A DNA stretch of 64,000 bases from contig OZ241831.1 of NCBI GenBank assembly GCA_965202585.1, forward strand, positions 57,164,001 to 57,228,000, read 5' to 3'. The position numbers and the translations under genes are program-made. This DNA comes from Thalia democratica. Taxonomy: Eukaryota. The notes beneath the pieces are model-generated. The model was not told the origin of the DNA and did not search any database. It saw nothing but the letters and a program-made list of their open reading frames with translations. Shown piece by piece: positions 9,393-61,511 of this stretch (its first letter is position 1; each line of letters begins with the position of its first letter).

Positions 9393-11896
9393 GTATGTTG
9401 AGTTGATACTACTGTTTTGTTAAGTTTAGATAAAGTTTTGCTATTAAATATCATTTATATAAGTGGTAAGCTAAATAATTAAGTATGGTATGTTGAGTTT
9501 ATGTTAATATTTTAGAAGTTTCATGTAAGCTTCTATATTAAATAATTGAGATATAAATTTTCGTCAAAAATTCTGCTTATTGAAGTAAAATATAGACAAT
9601 TGATTTAATTATTTTTGATATAAACTTCTTTATTGCTGTATTAAACTAGATCGTTGTGCTGTTTAAAGTTGTGCCCTATGTAGGTTACAAGCTAGTTTTA
9701 AAGTCCCGGGTAGAACATTACTTTTTGGTTGATGTTGCAAGTCAAACATGGTAAGAAGGAATCAAAAGAAACTTAAGGAAAAAAAAGCAATCATCAGCAT
9801 TCAGTTTTATACTTACACATTTTATTTTTATTTTGGATTGCATATATTTTTAATTTTATTATTCAAATAATTAGTGCATCTTACTTTTTTTAAAAACAAT
9901 CAAAAAATGTAACTTTTAAAATTATCTAATTTCACTTAATTCCCCTAGTATTATTTGTTTATGTAGCAAAACTAATAACTTTAAGCTGTATTTGCAAATA
10001 TTTTGTGAATTTTTATTCTTATATTTGCATTTCGTTTTGTTTTAACGTTACACTGATCAGTGATGGTATTGACGCTGGTATTTATTTGTTTTTGCTTTTC
10101 AAGCATTACTTTTGTTTACACTGATTATCTATGCGCACGTATTGTATACCGACGTTTAATATTTTTGTATAAACATCGAATAAAATTTAAAATGATAAAA
10201 AAAAAAATGTTTTGTATTTATGTGTAATTTACTTTGTTTAATTTTCATCTATTTTAACTTTTGTTATGGTATTGCAGTATAAAAGTTTGCTAAACTTTGT
10301 TTAGATCAAGTCATTATTGTTGTACTGAAAGTTATTTTCAATATAATAACTTTTTAATAAATATGATAACTTTTTCTTGGTGTGTTTAATTTTAGATATA
10401 TGTATTCAATTTAAAATCAGCATCATTTAATTAGTGTTACATTCATTGGTTACACTTTTATTTAAAAAATTTGTCTTTTTCAAATTATATTATCTACTCT
10501 TTACTGTTTTCAGTATTTTAACAATAAAAAAAAAATCACTTAACTTTCGCTAGCTTGGGATAATCATAATTTTATAGATTTATTTTAACGCTCTTTTTTT
10601 TTACAATTAAAATCAAAATATGTGTATGCATTAGATAAAACTGATAACTTTTTGTTTAAAAAAATTGTTATAAGTTTTGAAAATGTGTTTATATTTAACC
10701 AAAGTTCACATTAAACTTATAAATCAACATTTAAATTTTTAATTTTATTATTCCCATAGTAAGTGCCTGTCCATTCTAAGCTTGCTTATATTTTTTTTTA
10801 TATAAAAAAGAAAACACTAAATTTAGTTTCCTTCAGATATACAGTTTTCATTTTTATGAATTAATAATTTTAGTTTTTTATTAATACGATGTTTTAAAAA
10901 ATGTATAACTAATTTTTTTTTTTCTGCTCATAAAAGCTGTTGTTTTATATTTGTTAAAATTAAAAATATACCTAATTGGACCAAAACAATTTTTGATTTC
11001 TTTGATACTTTTTACTGATTTTTTCTGTGTTGATCACTTTCAGTATTCTAAACTAAAAGTCTGTATTAAAGATTAGTAATAAAAAAATACAGGTAAAGTT
11101 TATGATGTAATTTGTGTTACAATCTTTTTGCCAATAGTTATATCATGAGTACATCATTTAGATTAAAAGTGATAAAGCTACTAAATTGTTTACATAAACT
11201 TTTATTCATCTATGTTAAGTATAATCCTTGTATTTTGTATCCTTATTAACCCTTGTATCAATTGTTACGTAAAACTAGTTAATAACATTTTAATTCAATT
11301 AATAAAGAATATATACAACGTAAAAAAATACTTAAAATGCTAAACTTTTTTGCTTTTAAATAATTTAATTATTTTTTTTGCTTATAACTTCCTTAACCCC
11401 TTTTAGATATATTACACTCTGCCAATAGATATACTCATAAGTTTTTTTGAGATAATAAAATTGTCTATTTCCAAAGGATTTTATGATATCATAAAAGTTT
11501 ATTTGTTAAAAGTTATTTTGTTATATCAAACTTTTTTTTTCTTGATATATTATTAATAGTGATTGTACTTGTTTGCACACTTAAATGATAGTTTTCATAT
11601 TTGAATACTATTATTTTACATGTTCACTTTTCTGGTTTACTTGTCACAATGTTTGTAGTACATGTTAGTTATGCTGGGAAGTGAAACAATTGTATATTGT
11701 TATGACGAAACAGACTATTTCATCAGGATGGCGTCGCAAATTATTACCTCAGCGTTTACTTTTTGTTGGACGTATAACTCTGTTTTTGTTCAAGTTTTAT
11801 TACCACATTTGTATTAAGATATTAATACAACTACTACTCAATATTGTTAGTAACAGACTTATATACGAATTTTATACTATTATGACGTAACAACAG

Positions 11897-12022
11897 GTGA
11901 CTTGCTTCCCGCTGACGGAGTTTTGATTCAGAGCAACGATCTTAAAGTGGACGAGTCCTCGCTCACCGGAGAGTCCGATCTCGTCAAGAAGGATCAGGAC
12001 AGAGACGTTTTCCTGCTCTCAG
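11897..12022 (+). CDS. ATP2B: PMCA exon 4 ([28 protein letters not shown]; A domain TGES)
   Basis: caacag / G|gtatgt, 126 nt; missed by the ORF track. Confidence 0.96.
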
Positions 12023-14717
12023 GTATGTATAAGTTTTTAATAAAGTTGAGAATTTTCCATGACAGCACAATGTAATTTGTTACTATGTGTTACATAAACT
12101 AAGGTTTTACAAAGTTATTTAATCTATTTACTATTTTAAGCTTTTAATAGAAGTAAAAAAAAGACGTTATTTTAAAAGTAGAAGTCTAGCATTAGGTTAA
12201 GTTTAATTCTAATAAAAGTGTAAGAGGTTAAGAGGATAAGAATGACAATGGTAGTTATTATTTATTCTTATTGTATAACCAAGCAATGTGTGCGCTATTT
12301 TAGACAGTTATATATATTTCTTTTTTAATGTATACTATAAAGATAAAGTAGTGAAATTATAAATATATCTTTGAAATCAAATTCAAAGTTACGCGAAACA
12401 CTTAATGCCAAGTATTTTTTGTTGGCTAGACTTGCGTAAAAACCCTACCACAAAATATTTCATGCTGAATTTAATTTGAATTCTTTAAATAAATTCTGCA
12501 AATTTACCAAGTTCGCACCAAAAGATAAGTGGAATCAAATTAATTAATATTTAATGAATGAAACCAAAGCAACGAGTTAATCACATTGATTATTTTCTAT
12601 ATAAAGCAACACACTTCCTATCTCTTTCTGTATGAGATTATTATTAACATTTTAGATCTCTTTGTAATGAATCTGCAATTCAATCAGATTTTTATCTTGA
12701 CAAGAAGTGTCATGATATTTTGGTAGCAATCTAAAAATATATTTTAGATGCGATTTTGAATAATATAAAGAAGCATTATATTATGCTTCCTTCTAGTTAT
12801 CTCAGTGCTAATATTTAATTGTATGTGCCAATTGAAATTTAAAGCCTCGTAATAAATGACGATTAAAAAGACAGCACAAATGAATAAAAATTTACAGCAA
12901 CTGATGCAAGACAAATTAGTCAAATTTGAAGTTCATCCTTGTGCCAGCACTTGTAACATACGTGCAATTCTTATTATTTAAATAAAAAAACAAAATGCAA
13001 AAAAGTTGTAATCAAGCGAAAGTGATTGCAGTAATTAACAAACACTCGAATATCAAACACACATATACATGTTGTCTTTTCAGCGTGGCGCTGAGTCGAT
13101 TAATTATTCATAACTTTCGCTCTGCTAGCTCTCTGCACCACACGCTTTCAATACTCGCTCTCTTGCTGCAGTGAGCTTCATTAGCATTTTTATATTGTTT
13201 GTGATTAAGTGCGTTTTCGTGTAAGTTTTCATGGCAACACATTGTCGTATCCAGGTTTGATGGAAAAGTTTGGTTGTAATAACTGCTTGATCCTTACTTT
13301 TTTTTTGCCTGTCAGTATATTGTTCATAGAAAATGTCGATTTTGAGTAAAAAGTTTAAAAGTTTAATAACTTTTTATTTAGCAAGCTTTAAAATAACTAA
13401 AGTAAATAACAAGTTTTAAGTTTTGAAGTTTCTGTGATGATCAACTAAAGTTTTGTTAAACTAAGTAAAACTAGTCACTTTTTATCTGGTTAGTAATGAT
13501 AAAACTGTTACTAATTGTGTTTTTTATTGTTCTGAAGACACAGGGTAATGCACAGAGTGAATTTATTCGTTGTATGTAACACAAGAACCTCGAATTATAG
13601 TTTAATCAAAACGTAATAAGGTTTATTTTATTCTTTTCAATTCAAATTAAGATCTGCTGTTGGAAATAAAATATTCAACCGGTTAAGAAAATACACAGTA
13701 ACTAAACTATAAAATAAATTAGTATTTCAGTTTAATTTTTTAATTTTTATTTTGCACGCATAACGCAACGTTTTATATATATGAGAAAGTAGCAAGTCAT
13801 GTGTGTATTAAGTGCGTAATCACTATTTCAACATGTTTAAAAAAATTATGTTTAGCATGATTCAAGTAACAGAATGCGTATATGATTTTTTTAAACTGCT
13901 CTCCTATAAATAAATCATTTTATGTTTAAGTAATTTGACTTGTTGGCTTAATACAATGTTTCCAAACTCATTTTCATACTTACCCCCTAAACAAAAACAA
14001 AATCCTCCTTAATCAGATACTACCCTTTTTCTAGTTTATTACCTATTTACTTTTTCATCTCTTTATTAACTATCGCCCCAAGGGAAACTCTGGTATAACA
14101 GTATAACAGTTAGTCCACTACAGTACAAATAACTTCTCTGTCTATCACAGTGTTAAATATGTATTTGTTATAGTGATCAATAAAAATTAAATCCTACTTG
14201 TATTACAACTGTAATTTTTCTTAAAAAAGACAGAACCTTTGTAGTGTAGATATGTTGCATATAATATCAAAGAAGAATAAACAAATTGCATTATTGCTCA
14301 TAAATATTTAATATATACGTATTGGTACCCGCTAAATGCAAGGCAGTAAGTGATAAATGTGTAACAACTTTACATTTACATATATATAAACCTTTTTATT
14401 AATAAAGCCCTTAAGGTGGGCTCAGTGTGAAAGATTTGATTTATCAAGTAAAATAACTAAAATTTATATATAATTAGTCCCAAGCAAAAGCTTATTTTGT
14501 GTATTTTAGTTCTATATATAAAATTTTATATGTATGTTTACAAAAGGACTCATGTTGTGGAGGATAAATGTGTATTAACTTAACATTTACATATTTATTA
14601 TATTGACACAGGTACTCATGTTATGGAGGGTAGATTTGTAATAATTTTGTATTTTTTTTGTACTTATTTGTAGATTTGTAGTAACTTTTTACTTATACAT
14701 ATATTATATTGACACAG

Positions 14718-14816
14718 GTACTCATGTTATGGAAGGTAGCGGTAGATGTGTGGTCACTGCTGTTGGTGTCCATTCACAAACTGGTATCATTCTATCACTT
14801 CTCGGTGCTGCTGGAG
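14718..14816 (+). CDS. ATP2B: PMCA exon 5 ([33 protein letters not shown])
   Basis: gacacag / G|gtatgg, 99 nt, phase 1-1. Confidence 0.95.
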
Positions 14817-17067
14817 GTATGGCTTTAATTTCATTGAGAAAACATGTTTTGTGTAACTTGATGTGTTTTGACTTTTTGCAGTGATATTTGCTCAAAAAAA
14901 AAACTTAACTGTATTTGTTGTGTCGGTTAGAATTGTGATAAAAAAACTGTACAAAAAAAACATTTCAATTTTTATTCAGTGTAATATTTTCCTTCTTTTA
15001 TTTCATATTGTATGGTAAATTAATTAGAACTTGCAGTATGCCCTCTTGATTGAAAAGCAATAAAATTTTAACTGTGCACGTAAATTAAAAAGTATAATAA
15101 AACTTTATTAACCAAGCTTATTTGCATATATCTGCATAAAGGCAGATACTAATGTATTCATAAAACATATTTCTGTTTTTGTGTTGTACAAAAAAAAATT
15201 GTGAATACTTTAACTAAGATTTAACCTGCAATGAGAACTTCAATTTCAAATAGAAAGTGTGAGGTAAAGTTTAAAACTAAACGTTTCCAAAAGTCATTTA
15301 AAAATCTTTTAAAGATTTAGTATAAGATGTTTTTTGATAAAACTAAAACAAAAGTGTAAGCTCTTACTCGATCATACAGCTTTACAACAAATCAGTTGAA
15401 AAAGGTTTTAAGTCATGAAACTACATGGATACTATCATGTACCTGGTTAATCCAAACACGAATTTTAACAAGTAACAACAAAGTTCACTGCAAAATACAA
15501 ACGCAGATTTGAAAAATTATAATGAAGGTTGCCTTTTGTAAAAAATGTGGTTGAAACATTCATAGCTTTGCGGTTAAATTTTGTGTGATTTATGAGATAA
15601 AAAACCAAATGAGAATATGAATAAGTCCATTTTTGGCATTTGTAGAAGAATGCTGCAATATTTTGTTAAGCTGCATAAGTTTGTAAAAAAAAAATTATTC
15701 AAGGTAAAAGCCCCAGTAAAATTTTCAGTCCAGAGCTGTCTAAAAAGTGTTGTTGAAATTTTGTTACGTTTATATAAAGTAAAATTTAACATAAAGTATG
15801 AGAATGCTTAAACTTTTTATAAGCTGCTACCTGTTTTTTGTTTTGCTAATTAAAAAATTACTAGTTTAACATAAAGATAAGTGTTTAAAAAAATTTGTGA
15901 AGGTTAAATGAAGCTAAAAAAATAAAGTAGAAATCTTCTTAGAACATGTTACAATAGAAAAATAATTCATACTTTGTATAATGCTACATGAAGTATTAAA
16001 TTCCACAAACCATTAATTATGACGTCACAACACAATGGTTTCTAACATTTGCAATTAAATGCACTAAAACTAGGTGTGTGGAGCAAAGTTCTCCAAAGTA
16101 TAATCTTGAACTTTTCTAAATTGTCATATTCTGATTTTTTACGCGTTTGGTTTTCATACTTAATTTACTTTTCTGATAAAATTTAAACTTCCTGGAAATT
16201 GTCCAAAATTCTAATAAGTTTATAGTGTATAAAGTCAATTGCTAGTGCAATAGTATAAACCAAGTATAAACTTTCTTTAATCGAGGTTAATTGTACTGTT
16301 TAGTCTGCATATGAAAGTTATTAAAGTTGAACTTTTTATTTAAACTATCATAGTGTTGTGATAATTGTTAATCTCAAATAATTAATAGATAATTTTTGAT
16401 AGAAGACAAATTAAAATTTTCTCGTATTTCACACTGTCGAAAAAGTTTCCACATATTTGAATAATGAGATTAGTTTCTGGTGTTGTTATGAATGAGTGTT
16501 TTTCAAGATTATATTTACGTACTCACTTTGGAATTCTCAGTATTTAAACAACACTGCTTTGTTATAATCTAATGTTTAAGACATATAAAACATTGTGTTG
16601 TGTAAAATACTGTTTAAATTGTATGTTTTGTGTCTTATTTATGGAAGTTTTTTATATGTTTTGTATGCTTTAAGGTTTTTATATTACAAAGTTCTATATA
16701 TTTAAAAAAAATTGTTTTAAAAGTATGCCTTCATGTTATCTATATGTAAAAGCTTTTATCTTTTTTATTTATTTTTTTCAGATTTTCTATTTAAAATATA
16801 AAAAAAAACTCTTATTGGTTAATATTTCAGTTTGTCAAAAGTTAATGAATTATTTTTCATATACTTTGTTAAAATTATTTACTTTGTGCACAGTTTTTAC
16901 TTAGCTGCCAAAAATCAATATTGTATTTTTCAATTGACTCTACGTTTAGTTATTAAAAAAATTATTTTAATAAAATAAAGATAACGGTAAGAGCATTCAA
17001 AACACTCTATTTGATTTTGTCAACCTGCGTGTACTTCTAATGTTTAAATATTATTTTTTCTCAACAG

Positions 17068-17241
17068 AGGACGAAACCAACCAAGCGGAACCGAGCGAGA
17101 CGGGCTCGTTGCTAGGTAACGACGAGGAAGCGGGGGGCGAGGGAAACAAGTCCGGTGAAAAGAAGAAGTCGTCCAGCAGGAAGGAGAAATCCGTGTTGCA
17201 GGCCAAATTGTCGAAACTCGCGGTTCAGATCGGTTATTTCG
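17068..17241 (+). CDS. ATP2B: PMCA exon 6 (site A loop: EDETNQAEPSETGSLL...KEKSVLQAKLSKLAVQIGYF)
   Basis: ctcaacag / G|gtcagt, 174 nt; KEKSVLQxKL motif. Confidence 0.94.
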
Positions 17242-17596
17242 GTCAGTTTCACAATTTTCAAGATAAAATATTCATTGATTTTTTTTTGTTTGATGATAAA
17301 AGCTGTTTGAAATTTATTGTATTTATCAGTATGAAACTTGTATTCTCTTAAAGTGATAGTGTTTGAAAAATCTTATCTTGAAAGAAATCCTAAAACCTTA
17401 GTTTGTCTGCTTTTTTTGTATGGTTTTTAATGTAAGCTTAAAATAAATTTTGGATACGGTTTTTTATTGTTATATAAAAGATCCCAATTACAAGAACAAA
17501 AAAACACAGTTTAAAAGATTAGTGGTAAGTTATTATGAACAAAGTTTTTATACTAAAATTTAAAGTTTTTATTACCTGGTTTTATTATCATTTTCC

Positions 17597-18260
17597 ACAG
17601 GATTCGTGTTATAACTAGTAACAGTCCTCACCATTATATTCTTCCATGACTGATAAAATAACGTAATTTCCTGATAAGCTGTAGTTTATCCTAATATTAC
17701 AACAACAACTTCAGGATTCGTGGTACCCCTTGTAACAGTGCTCATCCTTATTACGCTTTTAATAATAACAACAAAATACTAATTTAATATTTTGTTGCTG
17801 ATAACAATAGTAATACCAATAAATAAAAGCACATCATAGATACCAACAGGATGCGTTGTATCATTAGTAACCTAATGAGGTTTCACAATTTTGTTTGAAG
17901 ATAGATAAAAGTTGGTTAAAATTTATTATTTTTATCAGTAATTGATGATTTTATCAGTAAATCATTAGTAACCTAACCAAAAACATAATGAGGTACCCTA
18001 ACTTTATATAACAACAACACTTTCAAACAGGGTTCATGAAAAAAGATAAAAACAATTTTTCAGAAATTACCTTGAATTTCAAGGTTACTTTATTTTTATA
18101 CAACAAAACTTCAGGATTCGTGGTATCACTGGTAACACCGCTCATCCTTTTTTAGTATTAATTAATGACAACGGATTAAATATTTTATATTTTGTTGCTA
18201 ACATAAACAAATTATCAATTTCAAACAGGATTCGTGGTATCACTGGTGACGGTGCTCATT
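17597..18260 (+). repeat. Array of degenerate copies of the exon 7 acceptor and exon start
   Basis: cag|GATTCGTG-like at 17601, 17715, 17850, 18031, 18115 and live 18229. Confidence 0.88.
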
Positions 18261-18443
18261 CTGATCATCATCTTCTGCGTGGAGGTGTTCGGCACTGGGG
18301 GCATGTCGTGGAAGAGCGAGTGCACGTCCGTGTACGTCCAGTACTTCGTCAAGTTCTTCATCATCGGCATCACCGTGCTCGTCGTCGCCGTCCCCGAGGG
18401 GCTTCCCCTCGCCGTCACCATCTCCCTCGCCTTCTCCGTCAAG
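18229..18443 (+). CDS. ATP2B: PMCA exon 7 (M3-M4, [20 protein letters not shown])
   Basis: tcaaacag / AAG|gttcgt, 215 nt, phase 1-0. Confidence 0.96.
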
Positions 18444-21400
18444 GTTCGTTGGTTTTTTATTTCAGGGTTTTTACAACAGTTTGAACTGAAAATAATAAGT
18501 GGTTGAAATAAACTGTTATTCTATGTTTTAACTTGTAATCATCACAAAATTATTTTTCAAAAATGTTGTTTATATTTATTGGGTTGTTATAAAGTTTCTG
18601 TATTGAGTTTCTGTTTATTTGTTCTCACAAAGCTCGCCGTCAAGGTTCGCGTGTTTGTTAATTGTTTCAAGGTTTTCACCACAGTTTTGACTGAAAAGAA
18701 AGTTGTGCACATTTACGAAACTAATTCATATACAGTTAGTAGTATAAACAATCCAATAGTTTGTTTAGTATCTTTGTGAAGGTTAGTGAAATTAAGTCAC
18801 CATTTCGCCCGCCTTCTCCGTCAAGGTCCGTGTGATTGAGTTTGTTTTTTAGAAAATTTATATCATAGTTTTTAAGAGTTGAAAAGTTAAAGATTGCCCA
18901 CTATGGGCTCACTATTTGAAGAGTAATTGTAAACAATAGTATTAGCAGTTTGTCAAGCTTTCTCTGTCGAGATTTGTCGGTTTTTGAAACACTTGTCAAA
19001 TTAGATACAATTTAAAGTGCGCATTTTTGTTTATTATGATCAAAATTAAAAGATTATTTAAAAAACATTCATAGGGATTAAATCTGTTTCAAAAAATATT
19101 TTGCAAAGTATTTTTCATTCTATTTTTTGTTAAGAGCCATGTAATTTATACTCTACTGTGACAACATAATTCTCATACACTCAAACTAGTGTCACTAACG
19201 AAATCGTGTAAGTCTTATTGCATGTCTACATACATATACTCAACTTACTTATTTCTTTTAATAAAACCAATACGCTGGTTTGAAAAGTTATAAAAGTATG
19301 ATATACACGTAAGAACAAAAACCCAGTCAACAGTATTTAACGCTGTAGTTATGTTAAATAGTCGAGTTTAGCAAATCAACAATTATTTACCTGCTCATTG
19401 ATCAAAGCAAAGTGGTGATTTAGAAACCACTGTGACGCAATAAACGCTTATTAATATTTAAACGGAGGTCACCCACTAATTGAGCAGACTGCCGTTTGTT
19501 TCAATTTTTTTCCCATTTTAAGTCGGTATAATGAGCAGTAAAAACTTATATTGCTGTAACTTTTTAGCTTATCCAGTTAAGAGGCTTAGTAGTTTATTGA
19601 TACGATTATGAGAATTATGTACAATTAATAATAATTATGTTTGATTATCAGCTTATAACGTTTCAAAACAAGCTAAACTGTTTAAAGTATATGTATTGTT
19701 TTAATTTAAATTGTTTTCCTATTTTAAGTCGGTACAATAAAACTTTATTTGCTGTGATTTTTTAGTTGGTATGACTAAATGGTGGGTTCAATAGTTTTTT
19801 TTTTCAATATGCCAATGAGACTTATGCACAACTAATATGAAATAATACCTGTGTTTAGAAGAATTAGAAGAATAAGCTTGTTACACATTAAACACAAGTA
19901 AAACTTTTAAAAGTATGTGTGTTTCACCACTAATTTTTGAAATACTGCTTTTATAATGCAATTATTTGAAATTTATAGTATTAACTACAAAAATTTATAA
20001 AACCAGGAATACTTTTCTATTTTAATTCTCTATCCGTAGTACATGAACCACAAAGTTCAAGTTAAGTAACTAATTAGTATCGATTGCGAAAACATATACG
20101 CAGAATGTTAAATAATGTGTATGAATATTATCCGAAAGTTCTTGAAGTTATGTTATTTTTACGACTCAAATGTTAATTGAATGTATGTATTTTAAGTAGG
20201 TAAAAGGGCTTTTGAAAATATTTACTGGTAACCCTGTTTTTAGTTAAGTTTACATGTATTTTCTTCGAATGGTTTGAATAACGGTATACAATTCAATTGA
20301 CTAAAAAGAAACCTAAACAAATTAAAAATTTTAACAATTAAAAGAATTAACTGCTAAAGAAAGTAATTTATAAAAACATTAAACTATAGATATAAAGTTT
20401 TATAAAAAAGTCCTAGTGGTTGCAGGTAGAGTTTAGTTTAAAAATAAAAAGTGAAATATAATTCAAAAAAATGATAGTTCACAAAAGCAAACTAATTCCT
20501 TAACAAAGTGTTTAAATAAAGTAATTTTATAAATAAAGCATTCACATGTAAGACACAAAGCTTTCAACTATTAGCATAAAGTAAATATTTACACAGTTAC
20601 TACACCCTTGAAACTTTTATACCTGTTTGTTTTCTAATTAGTCTTTTGTAATCATTTTTCAGTATTTTAAGTTTTTATGTTTGAAGAAATACAGCTAAAC
20701 TTGAATTGGAATAATGACGTTATTTTTAGGTGACATTTTTCTTTGAATAATGATTTTGTATCTTTGAATTAAGTTATCAACAGCAATACAGCTTAAGTTC
20801 ACCTTATCAGTATTACACATCATATAATACTTAGTAATTTGTTAAGGGTAATATTATTTAATGTAAAAATAAATTTAACGGTTTTAGCTTTGTATCAATT
20901 TGTTTTAAGTTATAGTGAAATATAACAGTTTATTATTTAAGAAACACAATTACACTGTTTCACCGCAAAGCGGATTTTCAAATTGTTAATCTTATTCAAA
21001 TAGAACTCAATAGTTAAATAATGAAATATCTACAACGTTTGGGTTAATGTCTTTGTTATAAGTTTATTAAAGTATGCATAAAACATCACAAGATATTGAA
21101 GCAAAACCAAAAAAAAAACGTTGTATAAGGTCTGCTCAAAATAAAGATTCCAAGAAGTTGATACTCAATAAAACTGTTTTAACAAATTTCTCAATAAAAT
21201 CCTTTTATATTGCGTACAATTATTTTCATACTGTTTAAATTTAACTCGGCGCTTTGAGAAAATAAACACAAAACACGCATTTGCAGTTAGATTCTCAAAT
21301 AAACAAATTATATGTTGCAACATTCACCATGTAAATGTATCAAAACTACGTTGATATCTAAATTCAAATGTTGTTATTCATTGCGTCATACCATTTACGT

Positions 21401-22446: not shown

Positions 22447-22593
<147 letters not shown>

Positions 22594-22632
22594 TAAAATA
22601 ATCTATTACCTAAGTGTTGAAAAAATTGATTT

Positions 22633-22690
22633 AAATGGAGCTTAAATGAGACCGGTTCAAATGGAGCTTAAATGAGACCGGTTCAAATGG
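22633..22690. repeat. Perfect 26-bp tandem repeat AAATGGAGCTTAAATGAGACCGGTTC x2.2
   Basis: Exact duplication read directly. Confidence 0.9.
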
Positions 22691-23039: not shown

Positions 23040-23042
<3 letters not shown>

Positions 23043-23074: not shown

Positions 23075-23077
<3 letters not shown>

Positions 23078-48399: not shown

Positions 48400-48501
48400 A
48401 AGTCTTTATTGTTTTAAATAAATTCAAATGAGCAAATCTTTATTGTTTAAATGAATTCAAATGAACAAGTCTTTGTTGTTTTTAATAAATTTTCAAAGAA
48501 C
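48400..48501. repeat. Tandem repeat, about 34-bp unit x3 (aagtctttattgttttaaataaattcaaatgagc)
   Basis: Three diverged adjacent units. Confidence 0.8.
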
Positions 48502-49326: not shown

Positions 49327-49540
49327 GACAGTCCACTGAAAGCGGTCCAGATGTTGTGGGTGAACCTGATCATGGACACCTTCGCCTCCCTCGCCCTGGC
49401 AACCGAGCAGCCCACCGAGGAGCTGTTGCTAAGGAAACCGTACGGGAGGAACAAGGCGTTGATAAGCAGGACCATGGCCAAGAACATACTGGGTCACGCT
49501 GTGTACCAACTGATTGTCATATTCGTCCTTCTGTTTGCTG
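49327..49540 (+). CDS. ATP2B: PMCA exon 16 ([27 protein letters not shown]; M6-M7)
   Basis: ctcaacag / G|gtttgt, 214 nt. Confidence 0.96.
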
Positions 49541-52500
49541 GTTTGTTTTTTATTTTGATTGTTATTTAAATAACTCTTTTGATTTAACATTCTACTTTAA
49601 TATTCTTTTAATTAAGATAGTTACAATTTGTAAAAAGTATCATCAAAAACGATTTTTTAATAGTTACTATTTATTTAGTTAATTAATTACAGTGCATAAA
49701 AATATCATGGGAAATAATATAGTAGTTTATGTTGTGTTTCTGCAAGTATTGAATTAATTAAAACAGTAAACAATGTTGTTTTGAAGATTTTTATTTGTTT
49801 GTTTTCAAAACAGGAAACAAAAACTTAATCAGATCAACTTTGATAATAGTGTTATGTTAGAGCACAAAAAAAAAGTTTTTCAGTTGAATCCAACGTAGAA
49901 TTTTACGTTTTACTTGTATTTTTAATAAAACTGAAGTTTGATAGATTGGAAAATACACATGCATTGTATAACAATTGCACATCCAACAATTTTTTTTTAA
50001 TTGACAACTTTATTTAGCTGATAGTTTTATTAAAACAAGCAATTATAAGCACGGCTTTTACTTAGCATCGATTTTATTTTTACCTTAAGTGAATTTACTG
50101 AAAATCCTTTCAAAGAAAAATATTTCGAATGTTAACCAAGTTTCATGCAAGTAAAAAAAATGAAGATAAAAAAAACTGCGGCTGCAGTCATAATAAGAAG
50201 AAAAATAAAAAGTTTCCAATCTCGGGCATGCGAAAACTTTGAAACTTTTATTTTAATTAGCGTGTTTCAGAGGAAAACGCGAAAAGGGGAAAAATTACAG
50301 CGCGGCTCTGAGAGGGTGGTCGATAAAAACAAAATGCAAAAGTTCAATTCCATTTACCTGTGTGCGCGCACAAAGTTTTTATCGAAAAGTCGGAAGGTTT
50401 ATGGAAAAAGTTATGAAAGCTTTTTTCGCTCTAATGTGTGGAAAACAACGCAGTGAGATTCGAGTTTTGCGAAGTTTTGAAACTGAAAGGTTGTACGGAT
50501 CAACTGCTATCTGAGGTCGCTTTTGTTCTTTTCATTTTTCACAGTCGGCATTTACTTTTTGAATTGTTGTGAATTTTTTAGTGTTGTAAGAAATTTAAGT
50601 GTTTTATAACCGAAACGGTTTGTTGCTTTTTTTTTTGAAAATCATTGGAGTAAATTTACTAAAAGGAAATTTAGCATCAATTAAAGCCACGACTTGCTTA
50701 ATTTATTTTGTACAAAGTCATAAAAGTAGGTACTGCTTTAAACTAAGATTTAAAAACAAGTTTTGTTTGTTTCTTGGTCATATATCTGATCAAAAGTTGT
50801 TTATATGCCCCGTATAACTTAATAATTCAAACTATTAAGTTTTTTCTTTTAATATCAATACAAGTATATATATATATATACCTTTTCTACTTTCAGTGTT
50901 TCCAGTTATACACAGTAACACTGTAATTACATTTGAGTCGCTTTTAAAAGCCCGAAAGTTGATTTGTAAGCAAACAGACACGTACCCGCCCCATATGGCT
51001 TTATATTTAATATAAATCAATATTGCCTGAAACAAAAAGCGCTAAAATAGGAAAAAGTTTTCACAGTTGCAGTTTATAAGTAAAGTTTACGGCGAAACTG
51101 GTTTTTGGCCATTTAACCGTGTTTAATGTAGCTTTTCATTCTCCGTTTAGTGGCAAAACTTTAAATGTAACTCTGATCGCAGGTTGAATAATTTGTTGCT
51201 TTGTTGTAAATAAATAATTAAATAAAACAAACTTGTGATTACATTTAGCACCGAGATGATTTTTTTTCTTTTGAAAATACTTATTTATTGACTAAAGTGT
51301 TTTGATGTGAATTTATCAAATGTATTTTGTTTGTTTCCGCATAGTTTAAAAGTTTGTTATTTGAATGTAAACTCAAGTTACACCTTTTTGTTTTATATAA
51401 ATTGTTTCAAAACTTTCATATTCGTGGTGCAATATCTAATGTTTGGTGTGACATTAAATGCGACATTTCAACTGTAAACAAAAGTTCTTTGACAGTTTTC
51501 CAAGTTATTTTATCTTGTTCGTACTAGAAACTGCAGTTTTTTGTTAAATGCAAAATATAACCAAGCAGTTTAATGACTATTTTATGAAGCTGTTGTTTTT
51601 TTTAATGTCTGATAAGTTATATTTTTTCTAAGTTTAGCAAAGTGTATCTTTTATCTATGTTAAAAACAATTGTTAAGTTTGTTTGTATCTGTTTTGAGAC
51701 ACTAACAGCAATTTCACAATGAAAAAAAAATCAAACAAAACTGTTTCCAACGTTTTTAAATTTAAAAGTTGAAACTTCAAGCGGTATTACCGAGTTTAGC
51801 TGGGATTTCACCACGCTTACCATGAAATATTAATTAGTTGTCAAAAAACTTTTTAAGAACTTTACAAAAACCCGCAGCTTTCTCATGCCGATTTGCAAAA
51901 TTTAAACTCTGCTCATATTTGTTTTAAATCATCGTTTTTCCAAACAAGTTTCTTGCTTATCTTTCAAACTGACTTTTCCGAAAACTTTCAGTTGATAATT
52001 TTTATTGATTTGCCGCTAAAGCATTGTGACGCGACAGATAATCCGCGATGGCCACTTAAACTCGTCGTCCGAAAACACCAAGTTTTCATTTTCGCTTTGA
52101 ACGTCAGCTAACTTTGAATTGGTTGTCAAAAGTGACAAATTTGTAGTTGTTAAAACAAAATTTTAGTTTGTGTTGATTTTTTCTTTCTATATTTGTTTGA
52201 AGTCTCAAGTTTGTTGATTATTAACGTTATTTATGGGATGCAAAAATTTTCCTCCAAAAGCTAGTATATATCTCTAATAATAAGTTGCTATAACTCACCA
52301 AATTGTATTTAAAAACCAGAGGTTTTTGGTTGCTGTAAAAAGCTGAAATCGAAAATTCGACAGAGAAATAAAAAATATTCCATAAATTCACGTATTCGAG
52401 CAAAAATTTAATTTGAAGAAAATCATGAAAACTCAACTTTTACAGCCACCGCAAAGTGGTGAAACAAAAAGTTTCCAAATATTTTCAACATATGCTGCGA

Positions 52501-54205
52501 GTTTATTGATTTTACCGTGGCATTTGCGTCGCTACGGTTTCATATGAAGTTTTATGAATACTGGAGAAAACGTGAAACAACGTTACTTTGTGTTAGAAGG
52601 TACGTTGCAACGCTGTAAACATCTGGGAATTTGCAAGAATCTAATCTTCCGAATCATCAGAAAAAGCTAATATCAAAGAATATAAAAAAGTACTTTTGGA
52701 TGTGTAATTGAAGCAGAAATGTAAAAACTGTTTTAATTACGAATGTAGTTTTACTGAAGTGAGGAAAAATCTTACAAATTAAAGTTAAAGAAGTCAATCT
52801 TTTTCAACATAAATTTTTCTTGTTCAAAAAAATTTGACCAGGCTACGTTTTTGTGCGTCGTACCGAATTGTCCTGCATAAAAGAAAGAAAAGCCCAAATT
52901 TGTTTGTTTCGTCATTTCAATTTATGACGTCACAGCAGCGTACGCAAAAGCTGGTGCTTTGTGACGTCATAATTCGACGCATCCTTGGGATCGGCTTTTT
53001 TCAAAGTTCAAACGGAAATTTTCTGTATCGTAAACAAGCACACAAATGTTAAGTCTCACTGTGAATGCCACTTTTTGTTTTCTTATTTACTAAAAAATTA
53101 GCGCGTGAAAGTTCAATGTTAAAAGCTTAAATAGCTGTGAATCGGCTGTTTGGTGGCCAGACACCTGATTACAAATATAAACGTCATTCAAGATGTAACC
53201 TACAAAAACGATTGATGATGATCAAAATTTGAATGCAGAAAACCACTTGATATTTTTTATTTGCAGCCCTTTCTATGATTTTTTTGCAGGAAAGATAAGT
53301 ATTTGATGCTTTCAACATTTTGTAGTGATTCAGGACGCATGGTTATAACCGAATTTTCAATTGAAACAATAAAACTGAGATAAATATATTTTTTACATAA
53401 AACAACAGGAAAATGTGTTCGAGAATTTTTATGCGTTGCGCCATGCAATAATCTCATCAATGTTTTTACGTTGCATTGATTTTCCGACTACACTGCGTAT
53501 GAAGCAAAACACAAAAAGTTACTTTATTCAGCCTTTTTTGAAATAAAAAACGAATTTCTTTTGATGTTTTTACTGAGGCCAGTAATGTTTTTAAAAGTAA
53601 GTGAAATTGTTATGTAAGTTTCGTTTAAATATACTCTCAACTCATTCGCTTGTGTTGGTTTGTAGTTGATCGTTGAACAGAATTAAACTACGAATTTTAT
53701 TCGAATTTTGATAAAAACAAATAAAAACCAATTTTGCCGTCAGTAACTTTTCAGCTATTTTTGTTTTTGAGGTTATTTTTAATGCGAACCTGCGCAGCAC
53801 AGTAGGATGTTGTTCATTTTTAGTAACATTTCTTCTAAAAATACTTTTAATGCCATTAAAAATCGAATTAACGACGGTGAATGCGCATGTTCAGAATAAA
53901 ACAGTTCCATTCTAAATGCCAATCGTTGAATCGCCTAATTTTATTTAAATAACAAAAATAATTTTTTGGCAGCTTTTTTTTAAGTTGCAATTAAAGTTAA
54001 ACAATTTATTTTTTTTGTACTGTTTATAGTCATTAACTTGTACTCGGTTTTTAACTTTGGGCTTCTGTTAAAAAAGTAACAAAAAACCTGCTGCTTATAT
54101 TTTTAGCCATGTAAATATTTTAAACCAAACAAATGAATTTTTTCTTATTTTTTATCATTTATTTAACCTAACATCTGCACTTAATTACTGAGTGTCAGTG
54201 CGTAT

Positions 54206-54450
54206 ATTCTTGAATGATTGTTAAATATATTCTTGAATAATTATAAAATTTATTCTTTTATAATTATAAAATGTATTTTTGAATATTTATAAAATAAATT
54301 CTTGAATAATTATGAAATATATTTTTGAATAATTATAAAATGTATTCTTGAATAATTATAAGATGTATTCTTAGATAATTATAAAATGTATTCTTGAATA
54401 ACTATAAAATGTATTCTTGGGTAATTGTAAAATGTATTCTTGGATAATTA
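54206..54450. repeat. Minisatellite, 23-bp unit TATTCTTGAATAATTATAAAATG, about 10-11 copies
   Basis: Periodicity read directly. Confidence 0.9.
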
Positions 54451-55860
54451 TCTCCTCTCAAAGCGCGTCATCAAGCCGCAGTTGATCAAATTCTGCCCGC
54501 GAATAATTGCACAAGTATCGATCCATTTTTATTGCCCTCTCTGTGTTTCAGCGTTCCAATTTTTCTCGAACACGCAAATTAATTTTTAATTGGATTCTGT
54601 GCTGCAATTTTTTTTCATGTCCAAGAAAATTTGCATGGACTTGATTAACTGGAAGTCTTGCAAAATTTGATGTAATACTTCTAGTTGAAATTAATTTGCT
54701 AAGAAGTTGTCTTTGCATTTTGTTGAATTAAACAATTGTTTTATGAACTCATTCGAGATAATTTCGTTCGAGCTATTTTTCCATTTGTTTGTAAAAAAGA
54801 TAAAAGTTATAATAAAATTGTATAAATAAAATTTAAATCACTGACTGAAACCCTTTAATTTTAGTTTAGGAAACATTTTTTGACCAAGACAAAATTTAAT
54901 CTGTTACACACTATTTAGTCTTTCTAGCTTATATTTTCTTGGAAATTTTTCTTTAAAGTGAGAAAGTTTTTCATACATTAGAAACTTTTATGAGCTTTAA
55001 CAAAAGTATTAAGTAGCTTTGAATAAAAAATAATTCCAAGACACATGCGCATAATTTACGTCATCATATTTGTTATAAACATAACAGAATATTGAGCCTA
55101 GTTTAAAAAATACTTACCTTTCAACAATATAGATGGATATAGATGTTAAGTTGAGCGATTATAGTTTAGCAAATTATTTTAAAAAGTTAGAAGTAATTTT
55201 TGATAACTAATATATTGAGAAATTGTTTGATATAGACAACGTTAAAACTCTAAATTTGTAAATTTGGTTTAAATCATCAATTGGTGAAAAGTTAACTGAT
55301 ATAGTTTTAGCTTATAACACGATTTTACTTTAGGACATATTTTATGTGTTGTATACAGGCTTGCCTTTCTAACTCATAGTAATTTAAGTTCTGAGCAATT
55401 TTATAATTGATTGAATTTCAAAACATTTTTACAATTGTGAACAATTTGTATATACATATATATATATGATATTAAAGCTATGAAGCAAAACATAATTTAC
55501 CAACACTTAAGGTTTTACCGGTTCTAATTATGTTATAAAACAAAATATGTTTGATCAAGTAAATTATGTTTAAACAACTATACATATTTATATACAAGAT
55601 TAATTATTCAAGATTTTTATTTGCAAAACTAAGTTTCACCCTTTAAGGGATATTCAGTTACAATTTAAATCTTATTCAAATAGGCCAAATTGTAACTGAT
55701 CATTCTTTAAAAGGTCAAACTCAGTTTTGCAAGTAAAAATCTTGAATAACTTATCTTGTATATTTGTCCTCTTATTTTTAAATAGTTAGAGAACTGTTTT
55801 TGTTAAATTTAGAACCTCAAATATAAGTCTACACATATTTATATCTTCAACAAAATACAG

Positions 55861-56072
55861 GTGAGAAGCTGTTCGATATAGACAACGGCAGGGGGCTTAC
55901 CCTTCACGCCGCCCCCACCCAGCACTTCACCATCATCTTCAACACGTTCGTCATGATGCAGATATTCAACGAGATCAACGCCAGGAAGATACACGGCGAG
56001 AGGGACGTTTTCGGCGGCATCTGGACCAACCCCGTCTTCTGCTCCATACTGGTCGGAACTTTCGTTGCTCAG
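55861..56072 (+). CDS. ATP2B: PMCA exon 17 ([10 protein letters not shown]...[25 protein letters not shown]; M8-M9)
   Basis: aatacag / CAG|gtataa, 212 nt. Confidence 0.96.
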
Positions 56073-56149
56073 GTATAACATATATATATTAGTATATATT
56101 TTTCTTTTAAATTATTAGTTTGTAAACTTTTTTTTTTCATAACTATATT

Positions 56150-56535
56150 CAGGGTTTCCACTTTACCTGGAAACTTGGAATTTGAAAGTTTAGGCAAAAA
56201 AAAAACCTGGAAAGATGAGAAATTTTGAAATAAAAACTGGAATTTTGAACAAAATTTGCTAAAAAACCTGGAGAAACCTGGAATTAGAAACAGTTTTTAC
56301 ATGTAAAGTAGAAAAATTTTGATTTGACACAAAAAAATCTATCATATAGATTAAAAAATTTTGTTATCATCAAATTTTATTCTATTAAAAAACACATATA
56401 AAGTATCTTTTAAATGTTTTTATACTATTTAACACAGTCTTTTACCTTAAAATTAACTTTAAACTAAAAATAGACCCAAAAACATGTACTTTCAAAAACC
56501 TGGAAGAGAATTATCAAAAAAGATTGGCAACCCTG
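56150..56535 (+). mobile_element. MITE family A copy 3 (CAGGGTTTCCA...TGGCAACCCTG), intron 17
   Basis: TIRs; shared internal gacacaaaaaa(a)tctatcat and aaactaaaaatagacccaaaaa; fills about 60% of a 640-nt intron. Confidence 0.8.
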
Positions 56536-56712
56536 GTGAGTTTCACCGGATTTCAAAAAGTTGGGTTTCTTCTTAGGTCATTAAAAGTTGTTGGAAGTTT
56601 TAAAATAAAACTTTCATTTTTGAAAATCTTAGTACAACTCTATATTTGTTCTCCACACAGGATAAAACCTGAATGTTTTAAAGTCTTAACTCTATATTTG
56701 TTCTCCACACAG

Positions 56713-56862
56713 GTGCTGATAGTGCAGTTCGGAGGAGTTGCTTTCACCACAACCCCGTTGACTTTATCGCAGTGGCTGTGGTGCATTTTCCTCGGCATGA
56801 TGGAATTGCTGTGGGGTCAGCTCGTTTCATCCATCCCCAACTCTGTCGTTCCCAAGAACCTT
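56713..56862 (+). CDS. ATP2B: PMCA exon 18 (VLIVQFGG...QWLWCIFLGMMELLWGQLVSSIPNSVVPKNL; M10)
   Basis: cacacag acceptor; donor CTT|gttagt chosen for phase 0 compatibility; 3' end slightly less certain. Confidence 0.88.
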
Positions 56863-57398
56863 GTTAGTGGCAATTTTATTAAACTTAAATTGGTTTCGAC
56901 ATTTAAAAAGTTAAACAAAATAATTTTTATTATAAAAACAATTCAACTGTGTCTTGGACCGATTTCGGAAATATTTTTTTTTACGTTTACCTGCATCAAC
57001 TTATTAAGTTTTGTTAACTAAGGTATTTGTAAAAGTGTCATACAAATTTAAACTTAGTAGCCGAATTCATTGTTCCAAAAACCTTCCACCGATTAAGTTT
57101 ATTTTTAGTCGTTTTAAGTGTTTTTATATTTTTTAGTAAGTTTTAAACTATTGAGTGCAGTACACTAAGATTAAAATAATAAATTTGTACAAGTGTCGAA
57201 CAAGGTTGAGCGTAATTCCCAAACAAGATTCCACCACGTCCGTTGTAAGTTACCGAAAGTTGTTTTTACTTCATTGCTAATGTCAAACGGAGGCTTCAAA
57301 ATTTACCCTGCGTATTAGATAGCTTTTTCTGTTTTTTGTTTTGATAGTTTTATTGAGTATTGCAAATTTTTTTTTTATAAACTCAATTGTATCAATAC

Positions 57399-57665
57399 AT
57401 CTTGTATTCTGTCAACAAAGCAAAAAGTAAAATTTTTTACCTAAAAAAAGTTTTCATTGTAATGCAAACAAATAAACTTAAGACTTACTTATAATAGGGA
57501 TGTAATTTAAAAGTAAAATAATCAACAGTTTATATCTTGTATTCTGTCAACAAAGCAAAAAGTAAAATTTTTAATCTAAATGAAGATTTTATTGATGCAA
57601 AAAACGAACTTAAGACTTACTCATGATGGGAATGTAAAAAATATTTAAAATTTCGTCAACAGTTC
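57399..57665 (+). repeat. Tandem duplication, about 135-bp unit x2, second unit ending at the exon 19 acceptor
   Basis: atcttgtattctgtcaacaaagcaaaaagtaaaatttt begins both units; both end in tcaacagtt. Confidence 0.88.
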
Positions 57666-57794
57666 AAGAAGAAGAAAGACGACTCGTCATCGTCGGACGA
57701 CGGCCTCAACGAGCCGGCTCACGACTTCACGGAGGACTCCATCAGGAGGGGACAGATTCTGTGGTTCCGCGGCCTCAACAGGATACAGCAGCAG
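57663..57794 (+). CDS. ATP2B: PMCA exon 19 (FKKKKDDS...IRRGQILWFRGLNRIQQQ; first half of CaM-binding domain)
   Basis: gtcaacag / CAG|gtatgg, 132 nt. Confidence 0.94.
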
Positions 57795-59694
57795 GTATGG
57801 CGTCATAATTGTCGTGTTGTTGTGGAAGTTTTGCGTCAACTGGTGTGAGGCTACCATGTTACAAGAAATCTTATTTTCAACTCTATGCTATCTATGAAAA
57901 TTCAAAAAAAAAATTTTTTTTTTGTTTTTTAAGTTTAGGTAGTGTAACTAAATAACTTCTTTTTATTTTATTTAGCTTCTTTTATTTAGCCTTCCACCAG
58001 TTGATGCGTTGTTTTAAAATAAAATATAAATTTTAAACAAAGTCGCTTCTAGTTACGTCATAGTTTCGTGACGTCATCAAAAAATTGAATTTTGATGACA
58101 AGTCTGTGAGAAAATCAGCCTTTGTAGATTCTCCTATCTTTTGTAAAACTTCTTATAGTCTGTCCTCTTCGAACGTTTTGTCCTTAGATCATGTGTACAG
58201 CTTAGCTTTACTTTGTTAAATTTATTTGTTAAGAGTATTTCTTTTTAATTTTTTATATAAATGTTTTATATATAAAGAAAAACTTTAAAAAAATGAACAT
58301 AAAAAATAGTTTAAATAAATATTCTCTTTTATTTTAATTACAAACTAAAATTGAATATATTTCTAGTTTAGTTTTAGTGTGTAAGTCTTTATAAAATTTA
58401 AGCAAAAATAAATGATAGCTGGTTTTAATACTATTTTCGTTTGAAAATTTGTAAAAACTAGCTAGTTTCAACTAAAACATTTTTATATAAACGCGCTAAC
58501 TCTAAACAAAAAAATGATAATTCTAAACATCTAAGTAAAATTTTGTATACATTCATTAAAACAAACGTCATTTAGTTTATTTTATTTTTTTTTTGTGTCA
58601 ATAATAATTTTTCTGTAAAACATTTTTTTTGACAAAAAGTTTACAAATCTAATTACAAACAGTAGCATTTCCGACAGGGCCGTCTAAAATTAAGATAAAA
58701 TTACAAGATTAAAAGAATAGAGATTTGCCCGTCATATATCAAATTGCGTCATTCACCCACTAATCAGACAGGATTAGACACTCACGAAATTCTATATTTG
58801 CAAGTTTTTCAACATTGATATCAAAATACCTCAGTATTAGAATAACTTCTCAGTTGACTAGTCTAATTTTAGTATTGTTTTAAAACTTTTCAAACTGTTA
58901 AAAAAGTTTAAGATTAAAATTTAAAAGTTGTAATCTTATTTAAAGTGCGCACATTTGTTTTATTCAACTCTGTTTGTTCAAAAAAATTGAGTTTTACTTA
59001 AACTGTCCTACAGTTTGTTTAGTTAATTTTTTTTTTCATAATCAATCAACTATGTGTTTGACAAAAGCTTTTCAGATTTACTTTAAATATGATCAATTTT
59101 GAAAAGTTTTTAAATATTTATAAAGGTGAACTTTACTAAGGTTGCAATTGCATATAGCCGAAATACAGTTTATTTGAATAACTTGTGTAAGACAACCAAG
59201 GAAGATTTTGTTGTTATATTAATTATTCCTCTACTAAAAAAGCTTTATAATTGCAATTTCGCGGAAATTGTTTGTTTTAGTTTAAACTTCTTTGTTCTCA
59301 GAGTTCAATGAACTTTTTAATGTTTGACAAGATGTTGAGAATAAGTTTATAATTTTAATATGTAGTAATTAACATATTTATAGTTTTTAAAGTTTTTAAA
59401 ATTTTATTTTCTTTTATAAACAGTTTACCAACCAGACAAGTGTTAGAGTGCTTTATACAGTTGAGCAATGATGTAATAATATTCAGTCAGTATATATCTT
59501 AATGATTAATATTTTGTCTTTAAAAACATTTTATACTTTATTGAAAAGTATTGGCTAAATATTGCTATTGTGATGGAATTTCTTTTCAATTTTACATATC
59601 TGATTTTTTTCGCATTACTTTATCTATCACTCTTTTACACTTACATTCATCTTTTCTGTTCTCCTACTTCTTATTATTTTCTTACTTGCAACAG

Positions 59695-59766
59695 ATAAAT
59701 GTAGTGGAAGCTTTCAAGCACACGTCTGAAATCAGATCCGGAACTTTGAAGAAGAACACCTCAGAT
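59695..59766 (+). CDS. ATP2B: Candidate alternative splice-site-C exon (INVVEAFKHTSEIRSGTLKKNTSD)
   Basis: Long pyrimidine tract then caacag; phase 0; resembles the second half of the CaM domain (IRVVNAF) and vertebrate site-C exons; donor GAT|gtaata. Confidence 0.72.
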
Positions 59767-61511
59767 GTAATATATTTCTATCTGTTTGTTGTTTTGCCTG
59801 GGTGTCTCTATGTGTCTCATGTGTGTGTCATTTTTATTGTCATTTCGGAATCTGATTAGAAACAAATTTTTTTGGTTCTAGTTTTGTCAATTGACACTTT
59901 TTCTTAGGGTTGTAAACTTTTTTTCCATTGCTGAAAATTTGGGGTGGTCACAGGCTTAAATGTATGTTGCAAAGGGAACTTTTTAGACCATGTAACTAAA
60001 TAAATACTTGAAGCAATTTGCTTTATAAAAATAATCAACAAAAGTAAAGTCAGTTTTGACTACGTTGCTTAGATATAAAAGATTAAAGACAAAAATGATT
60101 ACAATAAATAAACTGAAAGTATGTTAGTGTTTATTTATAAAAAATAAATACTATGTTAAAGAGTCAATTCCACAATACTCAAAAATTTGAAAACTGGTTT
60201 TTGTTCAGATTCCTCCTTTCATGTTATCTTTCTTGTAGCTCGTTTGTTCAAAGTACTAACCGCATCTTTGTGTTTGATTTATCAACAAACTAACAAATTG
60301 TGTGTTTCATATTAATAACTTCCTTCTAAATTTAATGCTAACATGTAGTTTAGGCTATGAATTATAAATAAAATGGTAGGTTTATTTTAATCAATTTAAT
60401 TTTCTTTTTTATTACGTGTTTTTATATGACTTGTTGTTGTTTTTTAAAGCAAGCTAAGTTTGCTTATACTCAAACTTGATGTATAAAATTTCTTTATTGT
60501 AAGATGGTATTAAAAGTGCATAACAGTGTATTAGTATTTAAAATATTACACTGTGAATATTTTAACTTTTTCTTCGAAGCTTGAGGAATTTTTCACTTAG
60601 GGTTTCAAAGAGAAGTTAGAAAATAGTAAGAAGTTTATACATAGATTTCATACCATAATAGTCAAATAAGTTAAGTTTTATTAATAACAATTTGTTCTAT
60701 TTTACTATGTGTGTTCTTTACAAAATTTTTTTTTTTTACTCTTAAAATTCTGTTATGAGTTTTTATCATTTCTTGTTCTTTATAGTTTACTTTATAATGG
60801 GTTAAAAAAATTCTAATTAACAGTTTTTAAATGAAATAAAAATAATATATTTTTAAAGTCTATTTGTTGTGTGTTTTGATTTTACTCTGATGGCTTTTTA
60901 GTTCTCTTATAAATTTCCTAGCTTTATATTTCAGCAAGTGGTGCTTAGAGTTCAACTGTTGATGTTTTATATTTTTAATAAAAAATTGTTGTGATGCTTT
61001 TCGAGTCTACTTTCTCTCCTACTTTCAATAAGAGTTTCTTTCAATACACTTTTAAATTTTGTGTTACTGCTTTTTAGATAGAATTTTTCACAACCTGAAA
61101 TGTTACACTGTTTCTTTGTACTTTTAGCACTTTTTAAGTTTTAAAACTTTTCTTCAACTGTTTTCATGTGAGGATTGTTCGTTTTTCTTGTGACTTGACT
61201 TTTCGAATTGTCATGATTCTAAATAATTCACTTTGAGTTTGCTTTTTCATACCTTTTAACACTCTCTGTGCTTGAAACTTGAGTTTTACAACTATCAATT
61301 ACTTTTTAGTGAAACTTCAAAGGTATCACACTACAATTGGTTGCAAACTCATTATTTTTTTTAACTTTCTTTATATTATATTTATTTTTCCTCTGAAGAC
61401 TTTACTGCCAGAGATTTTTACAACTTGTTCAATATTTTCGCCAAGCTTGTTTTCATTCACACAGCTTTCTATTCATCCTTATAATTTCTTCTCTTAGTTG
61501 TCTCCCCGTAG

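Follow-up and report, generated by a model that had tools for sequence, protein, structure and literature searches.

Why do the partial copies of splice junctions that lie in the introns of a calcium pump gene of Thalia democratica differ from the exons they resemble mainly at silent third codon positions? The question is raised by a window of 64,000 nucleotides (contig OZ241831.1, positions 57,164,001 to 57,228,000) with a G+C (GC) content of 27%, the + strand of which carries a plasma-membrane Ca2+-ATPase (PMCA) gene (6430..62571; coordinates are those of the window). An exon model built by tblastn with a PMCA homologue of 1216 amino acids (P0143) and by junction scoring comprises 19 exons (E1 to E19, 6433–57794), with a coding sequence open over 1090 codons and AG/GT at every junction. 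In the introns adjoining several of these exons, direct copies of the splice junction of 20–50 nt, here called echoes, were found next to the copied edge. Each consists of approximately 5–15 nt of intron (in some cases only a few nt), the splice dinucleotide and 6–40 nt of exon, and then ends abruptly. The excess of third-position differences between the echoes and the live exons probably arises from neutral decay of the echoes combined with purifying selection on the exons and a very high silent polymorphism.

The echoes were identified in two ways. Comparison of the exons ± 30 nt with the window by blastn (E ≤ 0.01) returned 15 non-self matches on the + strand and none on the − strand. In an ungapped scan with exon-edge probes (within 1.5 kb, score ≥ 12), 36 matches lay on the expected side (upstream of an acceptor edge or downstream of a donor edge) and one on the wrong side. 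Echoes of score ≥ 14 were present at 15 of the 36 PMCA exon edges, at irregular offsets of 93–711 nt (Table 1), and Tandem Repeats Finder reported no array at the echo sites. As a negative control, 30 mostly intronless kinase loci retrieved from the same genome by a Pfam kinase search gave chance-level results, with four matches on the expected and seven on the wrong side. Logan contigs of run X1 span the E12 echo array without differences, an X4 contig spans 38440–38576, and one 2016 marine-metagenome contig (X4) joins the E13 acceptor echo and E13. Since contigs of X1 and of the metagenome carry the echoes, these are not an assembly artefact. A search of the metagenome with an 18-nt degenerate pattern of the E12 junction gave 120 chance matches, none of them homologous to the window by blastn, and no alternative haplotig of the locus was found in the 802-Mb assembly.

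Judged from their sequence, the echoes look non-functional, because in each acceptor echo the frame is closed by a stop 3–40 codons on, before the live exon, and because the splice dinucleotides decay at the rate of codon positions 1 and 2: AG or GT is retained in 25 of the 29 echoes of score ≥ 14, and about 24 would be expected from decay at that rate. Each echo has a single splice site and a truncated exon part, with no consistent donor after the exon-like part. Homology of the flanks was clear in a local gapped test for 8–9 echoes (77–92% identity, z > 5), and the others had no significant similarity there.

An automated tally of mismatches between echoes and live exons gave 23, 15 and 63 at codon positions 1, 2 and 3 over 219, 223 and 221 sites, respectively, so that 62% fall at position 3; positions 1/2 mismatch at a rate of 0.086, as against 0.285 for position 3 (Fisher p = 8 × 10−11). 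The third-position share was 67% when only echoes of score ≥ 14 were counted, and addition of the echo at 61321–61346 (1/0/3) brought the count to 66 of 105. A cluster bootstrap over exon edges placed the share at 0.53–0.69 and the rate ratio at 2.3–4.35, with P(share ≤ 0.5) = 0.007, and when each distinct site and state was counted once, the numbers were 22/14/48 (57% at position 3). Fifty-seven of the 63 mismatches at position 3 were synonymous. The intron flank adjoining the junction showed a divergence of 0.29–0.32 over its first 8–12 nt, the same as position 3, and position 3 therefore behaves like neutral sequence, positions 1/2 being protected on the live side.

The bias had been noticed by eye in an earlier note on this DNA, and the four examples quoted there are all present in the sequence: at the E3 donor the live exon reads AAA TAC and the echo AAG TAT (9479–9499), at E10 CCG TCG and CCA TCA (30029–30053), at the E13 acceptor GTG..GCG and GTA..GCA (41020–41042), and at the E13 donor AGA AAC AGC and AGG AAT AGT (41424–41452). 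The bias itself is thus real, but the share of 75% given in that note was not reproduced by the automated tally or by the collapsed count.

According to the explanation that we favour, the echoes would be dead partial duplicates of splice junctions, placed in the adjoining intron of the PMCA gene. An echo would decay as non-coding DNA at all codon-equivalent positions, and the live exon, being under purifying selection, would change almost only at synonymous sites, two steps that are borne out by the tallies. The third ingredient, which has quantitative support, would be an extreme polymorphism of approximately 7–13% at synonymous sites and 7% in introns. Echo and exon would then coalesce deeper than the duplication itself, be it in the ancestral population or because the assembly switches between haplotypes, and this deeper coalescence would add a divergence of about the synonymous diversity (πS) at synonymous sites only. 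Selection of the sample would act as a fourth factor, as only young, similar echoes are detectable and the polymorphism offset would dominate in these, which would explain why the share counted by eye exceeded the automated one. Neither a drive of third positions to G/C, nor decay at CpG sites, nor coding constraint on the echoes would be needed, and the whole pattern would amount to ordinary population genetics in an unusual genome.

The polymorphism required by this explanation was seen in other sequencing runs. In introns, two haplotype contigs of run X1 are 8–11% apart and carry many indels besides. Between the reference and X3 or X4 there are at least about 0.07–0.13 differences per codon and at least about 0.07 per site in intron 2, synonymous diversity being similar to intron diversity. 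Among the variants listed in X1, X3 and X4 for the live exons E2, E3 and E12, 22 of 26 were synonymous and 20 of 26 were at position 3, a fraction of about three quarters like the one counted by eye in the earlier note. At one live site (9388), where the exon has A, the G of the E3 donor echo recurs in other runs, as the allele of X3 and as a minor one of X4. Over 37900–43880 and 8600–9520, about 5–7% of all positions vary in X1, X3 and X4. Several variants are common to runs labelled as different organisms, and this sharing may reflect a species complex or a single hyperdiverse species. In E2/E3, X4 alone carries four conservative amino-acid differences (Q/E, L/V, I/V or I/M; 9212–9214, 9167, 8709), the differences of X1 and X3 in these exons being silent only; X4 may sample a more distant lineage.

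The lineage on which the changes occurred was assessed at the approximately 55 sites per codon position that are covered by at least two echoes. States common to several echoes and absent from the live exon numbered 1/1/10 at positions 1/2/3 (10 of 12 at position 3), which points to changes on the live lineage, nearly all of them silent. Where a state occurred in a single echo and a second echo confirmed the live state, the counts were 12/7/21 over 144/148/148 echo-sites (Fisher p = 0.013), and the excess of these private states at position 3, 0.077 per site, equals the measured synonymous diversity. At position 3, the private states had G/C in the echo where the exon has A/T in 11 cases and the reverse in 7, the opposite of AT-ward decay, and this lean fits the sampling of alternative alleles of an exon with a high GC content at third positions (GC3). 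Two clear pairs in which one echo derives from another differ at 4/3/3 sites by codon position. The surplus of private states, being equal to πS, fits allelic differences present at the birth of the echoes, constraint on the echoes being a less likely source of it. These shared and private states, together with the G at 9388, support the suggestion in the earlier note that echoes record earlier or allelic versions of the exon.

We described the process by a model in which an echo accumulates a divergence τ at all sites, the exon adds f × τ at silent sites (f about 0.8), and an offset a is present at silent sites. In simulations with the same detection rule, a = 0 gave a third-position share of 48% (P of at least the observed share ≤ 0.003) and was rejected, whereas a = 0.07 gave 57–59% (P = 0.09–0.24) and a = 0.10 gave 60–63% (P = 0.25–0.5). 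The null share of about one half assumed in the earlier note hence holds only without polymorphism; with the diversity of this species, approximately 57–63% is expected. In a random-effects likelihood analysis, a = 0 with a slope of 1.75–2 was 7–9 log units below the maximum, and a = 0.10 with the same slope was 1.7–1.9 below.

Several points weigh against this explanation. The maximum-likelihood offset was 0.28 with a slope of 0, which is above the measured πS; we tentatively attribute this to the score threshold, which would force a negative correlation between mismatch classes. Ten echoes without mismatches at positions 1/2 (0/92) have 12/45 at position 3, in mild tension with an offset of 0.07–0.10 (p = 0.02–0.06, post hoc), a tension that would lessen if coalescence times varied exponentially from echo to echo. 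Lastly, the estimate of πS is based on three exons and on listed variants only, and the runs are labelled as different organisms (A, B and metagenome) that may be sibling species.

The high offset without a slope and the ten echoes unchanged at positions 1/2 could also be read as signs that the exon-like part of the echoes is itself constrained and spares only third positions, either as part of a translated isoform or through selection against variants that could be converted into the live exon. Many echoes indeed have no detectable flank similarity beyond about 12 nt while their core is well kept; some flanks are, however, alignable at 78–92% identity once indels are allowed. The stops in the acceptor echoes, the want of a consistent donor, the decay of AG/GT at the position-1/2 rate and the uniform differences between echo-from-echo pairs all speak against such constraint, which we regard as unlikely. 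Gene conversion between echo and exon was rejected as a cause, since in either direction it removes differences at position 3 no more slowly than those elsewhere and cannot create the pattern.

Taken at face value, a true synonymous offset of 0.2–0.3 would mean that echoes are regenerated from very deep allelic classes or are selected at positions 1/2, for which a possible cause is that mutated echoes pose a gene-conversion hazard to the live exon in a population of huge effective size. We consider such an offset improbable; if it were true, ladders of echoes would record exon alleles in order of time across the genome and would reveal a new second-order constraint on intronic DNA.

It is equally doubtful that there is no real excess over the textbook share of about 50%, the appearance of one being created by selection by eye and by counting a single live substitution once per echo. 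The drop from 75% by eye to 62% in the automated tally agrees with this idea, as does the collapsed share, since 57% does not exceed 50% significantly (p = 0.11). The appropriate null for collapsed counts is, however, about 42%, because changes on the backbone are merged and those from echo decay are not, and against this null p = 0.004; moreover, the bootstrap, the simulation without offset and the private states taken alone each reject the absence of an excess.

A further explanation holds that the live exons have been driven to G/C at position 3 since the copying, by biased gene conversion or codon selection, and that the echoes keep the older A/T. The GC content at positions 1/2/3 of the PMCA exons is 0.52/0.38/0.75 and that of the introns 0.255, so that exon GC3 of 0.75 faces an intron GC of 0.25; 38 mismatches at position 3 have G/C in the exon and A/T in the echo and 20 the reverse, and the polarised shared events comprise seven changes from A/T to G/C and three in the other direction. 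The remark in the earlier note that A/T usually stands in the echo opposite G/C in the exon nevertheless turned out to be an effect of composition: per-site rates are symmetric, with a mismatch rate at position 3 of 0.29 at G/C and 0.27 at A/T sites (p = 0.76), and the impression arises because GC3 is 0.63–0.75 and shared sites were counted repeatedly. The 7:3 ratio lacks significance (p = 0.34), and of those seven events three fall at CpG, where parallel decay of echoes is possible. With private states leaning to G/C in the echoes and synonymous diversity close to that of introns, which gives no sign of faster exon turnover, a drive towards GC3, as also proposed in that note, is very unlikely.

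Preferential deamination of CpG at third positions in methylated gene bodies, the remaining alternative raised there, is scarcely credible, since the position-3 mismatch rate of 0.36 at CpG does not differ significantly from the 0.27 at non-CpG G/C (p = 0.31), A/T third positions also mismatch at about 0.25–0.27, CpG at positions 1/2 mismatch at only 0.05 (positions 1/2 in every class at 0.05–0.10), and CpG is not depleted (observed/expected 1.03 in exons and 0.82 in introns). A fall of the share to about 50% after CpG removal, as envisaged in the note, was not seen either: with CpG removed from both copies the rates were 0.089/0.060/0.267 and the normalised share stayed at 64%. Chance matching of AT-rich intron to the AT-richer codon positions 1/2 was likewise rejected as a source of the bias, as A/T and G/C third positions mismatch equally and the wrong-side and minus-strand controls were nearly empty.

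The combination of neutral decay, purifying selection and polymorphism has parallels in known systems. When a pseudogene is compared with its functional parent, the dead copy has changed everywhere and the parent nearly only at silent sites, which leads to a pile-up of differences at third positions. The echoes resemble such a pair in that position 3 accounts for 10 of the 12 shared states and that echoes copied from one another differ evenly across codon positions; unlike pseudogenes, they are only 20–50 nt long, span a splice junction, sit in an intron of the same gene and are subject to a large polymorphism offset, which lifts their third-position share from about 48% to about 60%. Coalescent theory further holds that ancestral polymorphism inflates divergence, because gene divergence predates the split. 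The neutral divergence between echo and exon likewise contains a term of about π, with an offset of 0.077–0.14 and a measured diversity of 0.07–0.13, but here duplicate and parent are linked and only 0.1–0.7 kb apart, so that recombination or haplotype switches in the assembly would be needed.

Tandem mutually exclusive exons are also local direct copies of exons in which a splice signal persists and most differences are synonymous, whereas the echoes have one splice site, a truncated exon part and stops, and are confined to the side of the edge that was copied (36 versus 1). The closest case of a copied boundary is intron 7 of human F7, in which the first unit of a 37-bp minisatellite spans the exon 7/intron 7 boundary and a row of pseudo donors follows the authentic one (PMC1557585). 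There, as here, direct repeats copy an exon–intron boundary into the intron. The F7 units are, however, regular, head-to-tail and near-identical and are confined to one human intron, whereas the echoes are irregularly spaced and diverged, occur at both acceptor and donor edges across the PMCA gene and form no array. A literature search returned this single human case and no account of genome-wide junction echoes.

It follows from the favoured explanation that a silent-only signature in echoes needs no exotic mechanism: selection on the exon, neutrality of the copy and a very high diversity at silent sites suffice. As a baseline, an echo would be remarkable only if its silent divergence exceeded about πS + 1.8 × its position-1/2 divergence. 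Echoes provide an internal neutral reference beside each exon, synonymous and intronic rates being similar here, and they confirm the hyperdiversity of this planktonic animal. The frequent copying of splice junctions in this genome is a more interesting question than the codon-position bias.

Table 1. Coordinates of the PMCA exons and of the junction echoes in the window.
Feature	Positions	Strand	Detection	Remark
PMCA exons E1–E5	E1 6433–6625, E2 8620–8817, E3 9126–9392, E4 11897–12022, E5 14718–14816	+	tblastn + junction scoring	
PMCA exons E6–E10	E6 17068–17241, E7 18229–18443, E8 22474–22561, E9 25501–25658, E10 30225–30359	+	tblastn + junction scoring	
PMCA exons E11–E15	E11 32698–32804, E12 38806–39040, E13 41177–41356, E14 43616–43810, E15 46062–46253	+	tblastn + junction scoring	
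PMCA exons E16–E19	E16 49327–49540, E17 55861–56072, E18 56713–56862, E19 57663–57794	+	tblastn + junction scoring	
PMCA C-terminal exons	near 59695–59766, 61512–61634, 62422–62571	+		
E3 donor edge, 2 echoes	9479–9499, 9733–9753	+	edge-probe scan	
E5 acceptor edge, 2 echoes	14534–14566, 14600–14633	+	blastn + edge-probe scan	
E7 acceptor edge, 5 echoes	17590–17630, 17712–17751, 17845–17871, 18021–18038, 18112–18148	+		
E7 donor edge, 3 echoes	18634–18656, 18796–18831, 18957–18983	+		
E8 donor edge, 1 echo	22747–22786	+	blastn + edge-probe scan	
E9 acceptor edge, 2 echoes	25186–25211, 25349–25380	+	blastn + edge-probe scan	
E10 acceptor edge, 2 echoes	30029–30053, 30104–30130	+		
E12 acceptor edge, 5 echoes	38089–38118, 38260–38283, 38442–38474, 38659–38684, 38736–38747	+		different inner breakpoint each
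E12 donor edge, 1 echo	39231–39256	+	blastn + edge-probe scan	
E13 acceptor edge, 1 echo	41020–41042	+	blastn + edge-probe scan	
E13 donor edge, 2 echoes	41424–41452, 41535–41552	+		
E15 acceptor edge, 1 echo	45912–45943	+	blastn + edge-probe scan	
E15 donor edge, 1 echo	46392–46411	+	edge-probe scan	
E16 acceptor edge, 1 echo	49120–49136	+	blastn + edge-probe scan	
E17 5' part, 1 echo	55216–55241	+	blastn + edge-probe scan	
Acceptor edge of putative alternative terminal exon (start 61512), 1 echo	61321–61346	+		3 of 4 mismatches at position 3

Individual arrays differ in structure. The E7 acceptor array contains a duplicated unit of about 400 nt, and the two E10 echoes have a common breakpoint and downstream flank, one therefore having been copied from the other. 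The near E5 acceptor echo (14600–14660) can be aligned past its ungapped match by admitting an in-frame deletion of 6 nt, and reads THVMEGRFVVTF. At the E12 acceptor, a serine codon reads TCT/TCA/TCT/TCG in echoes and TCC in the live exon. The first exon base is G in the four older E12 acceptor echoes (38095, 38266, 38448, 38668), giving CAG|GT, like a recursive splice site, and A in the live exon (38806) and the youngest echo (38736–38747), the G/A change being silent (AAG/AAA, Lys across the junction).

Among other features of the PMCA gene, all 18 acceptor sites have an A-rich consensus (caACAG, acACAG, aaACAG) with a marked ACAG and without a polypyrimidine tract, and 10 of 18 exons begin with GT, forming AG|GT junctions. 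A perfect donor-like motif, GAG|GTAAGT, lies inside E12 (38950–38962) and may represent a cryptic 5' splice site or an alternative one. The closest protein was a Tara Oceans metatranscriptome sequence (P0001, 238 amino acids), 95% identical over E2–E3, which past the end of E3 runs into unrelated sequence; either the transcript is chimeric or unspliced, or a close relative uses another downstream exon there. Intron 16 contains a minisatellite (54205–54451, 23-nt unit, 10.7 copies, 84% match). An interspersed repeat of about 250 nt is present in three copies in the window (40500–41100, 1633–1883 and 56274–56512; 64–80% identity), with a summed Logan word depth of approximately 190,000–300,000 in X1 and X3 and many contigs breaking or joining there; the repeat in the PMCA introns is probably a very abundant short mobile element resembling a short interspersed nuclear element or a miniature inverted-repeat transposable element. 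Elsewhere in the genome, contigs C8 (12.3–17.8 Mb and 53.5–53.8 Mb), C6 and C1 carry protein-kinase genes, apparently intronless, in large tandem families. Many of these genes do not share the GC3-rich codon usage seen in the PMCA gene, so that the genome contains two very different classes of codon usage.

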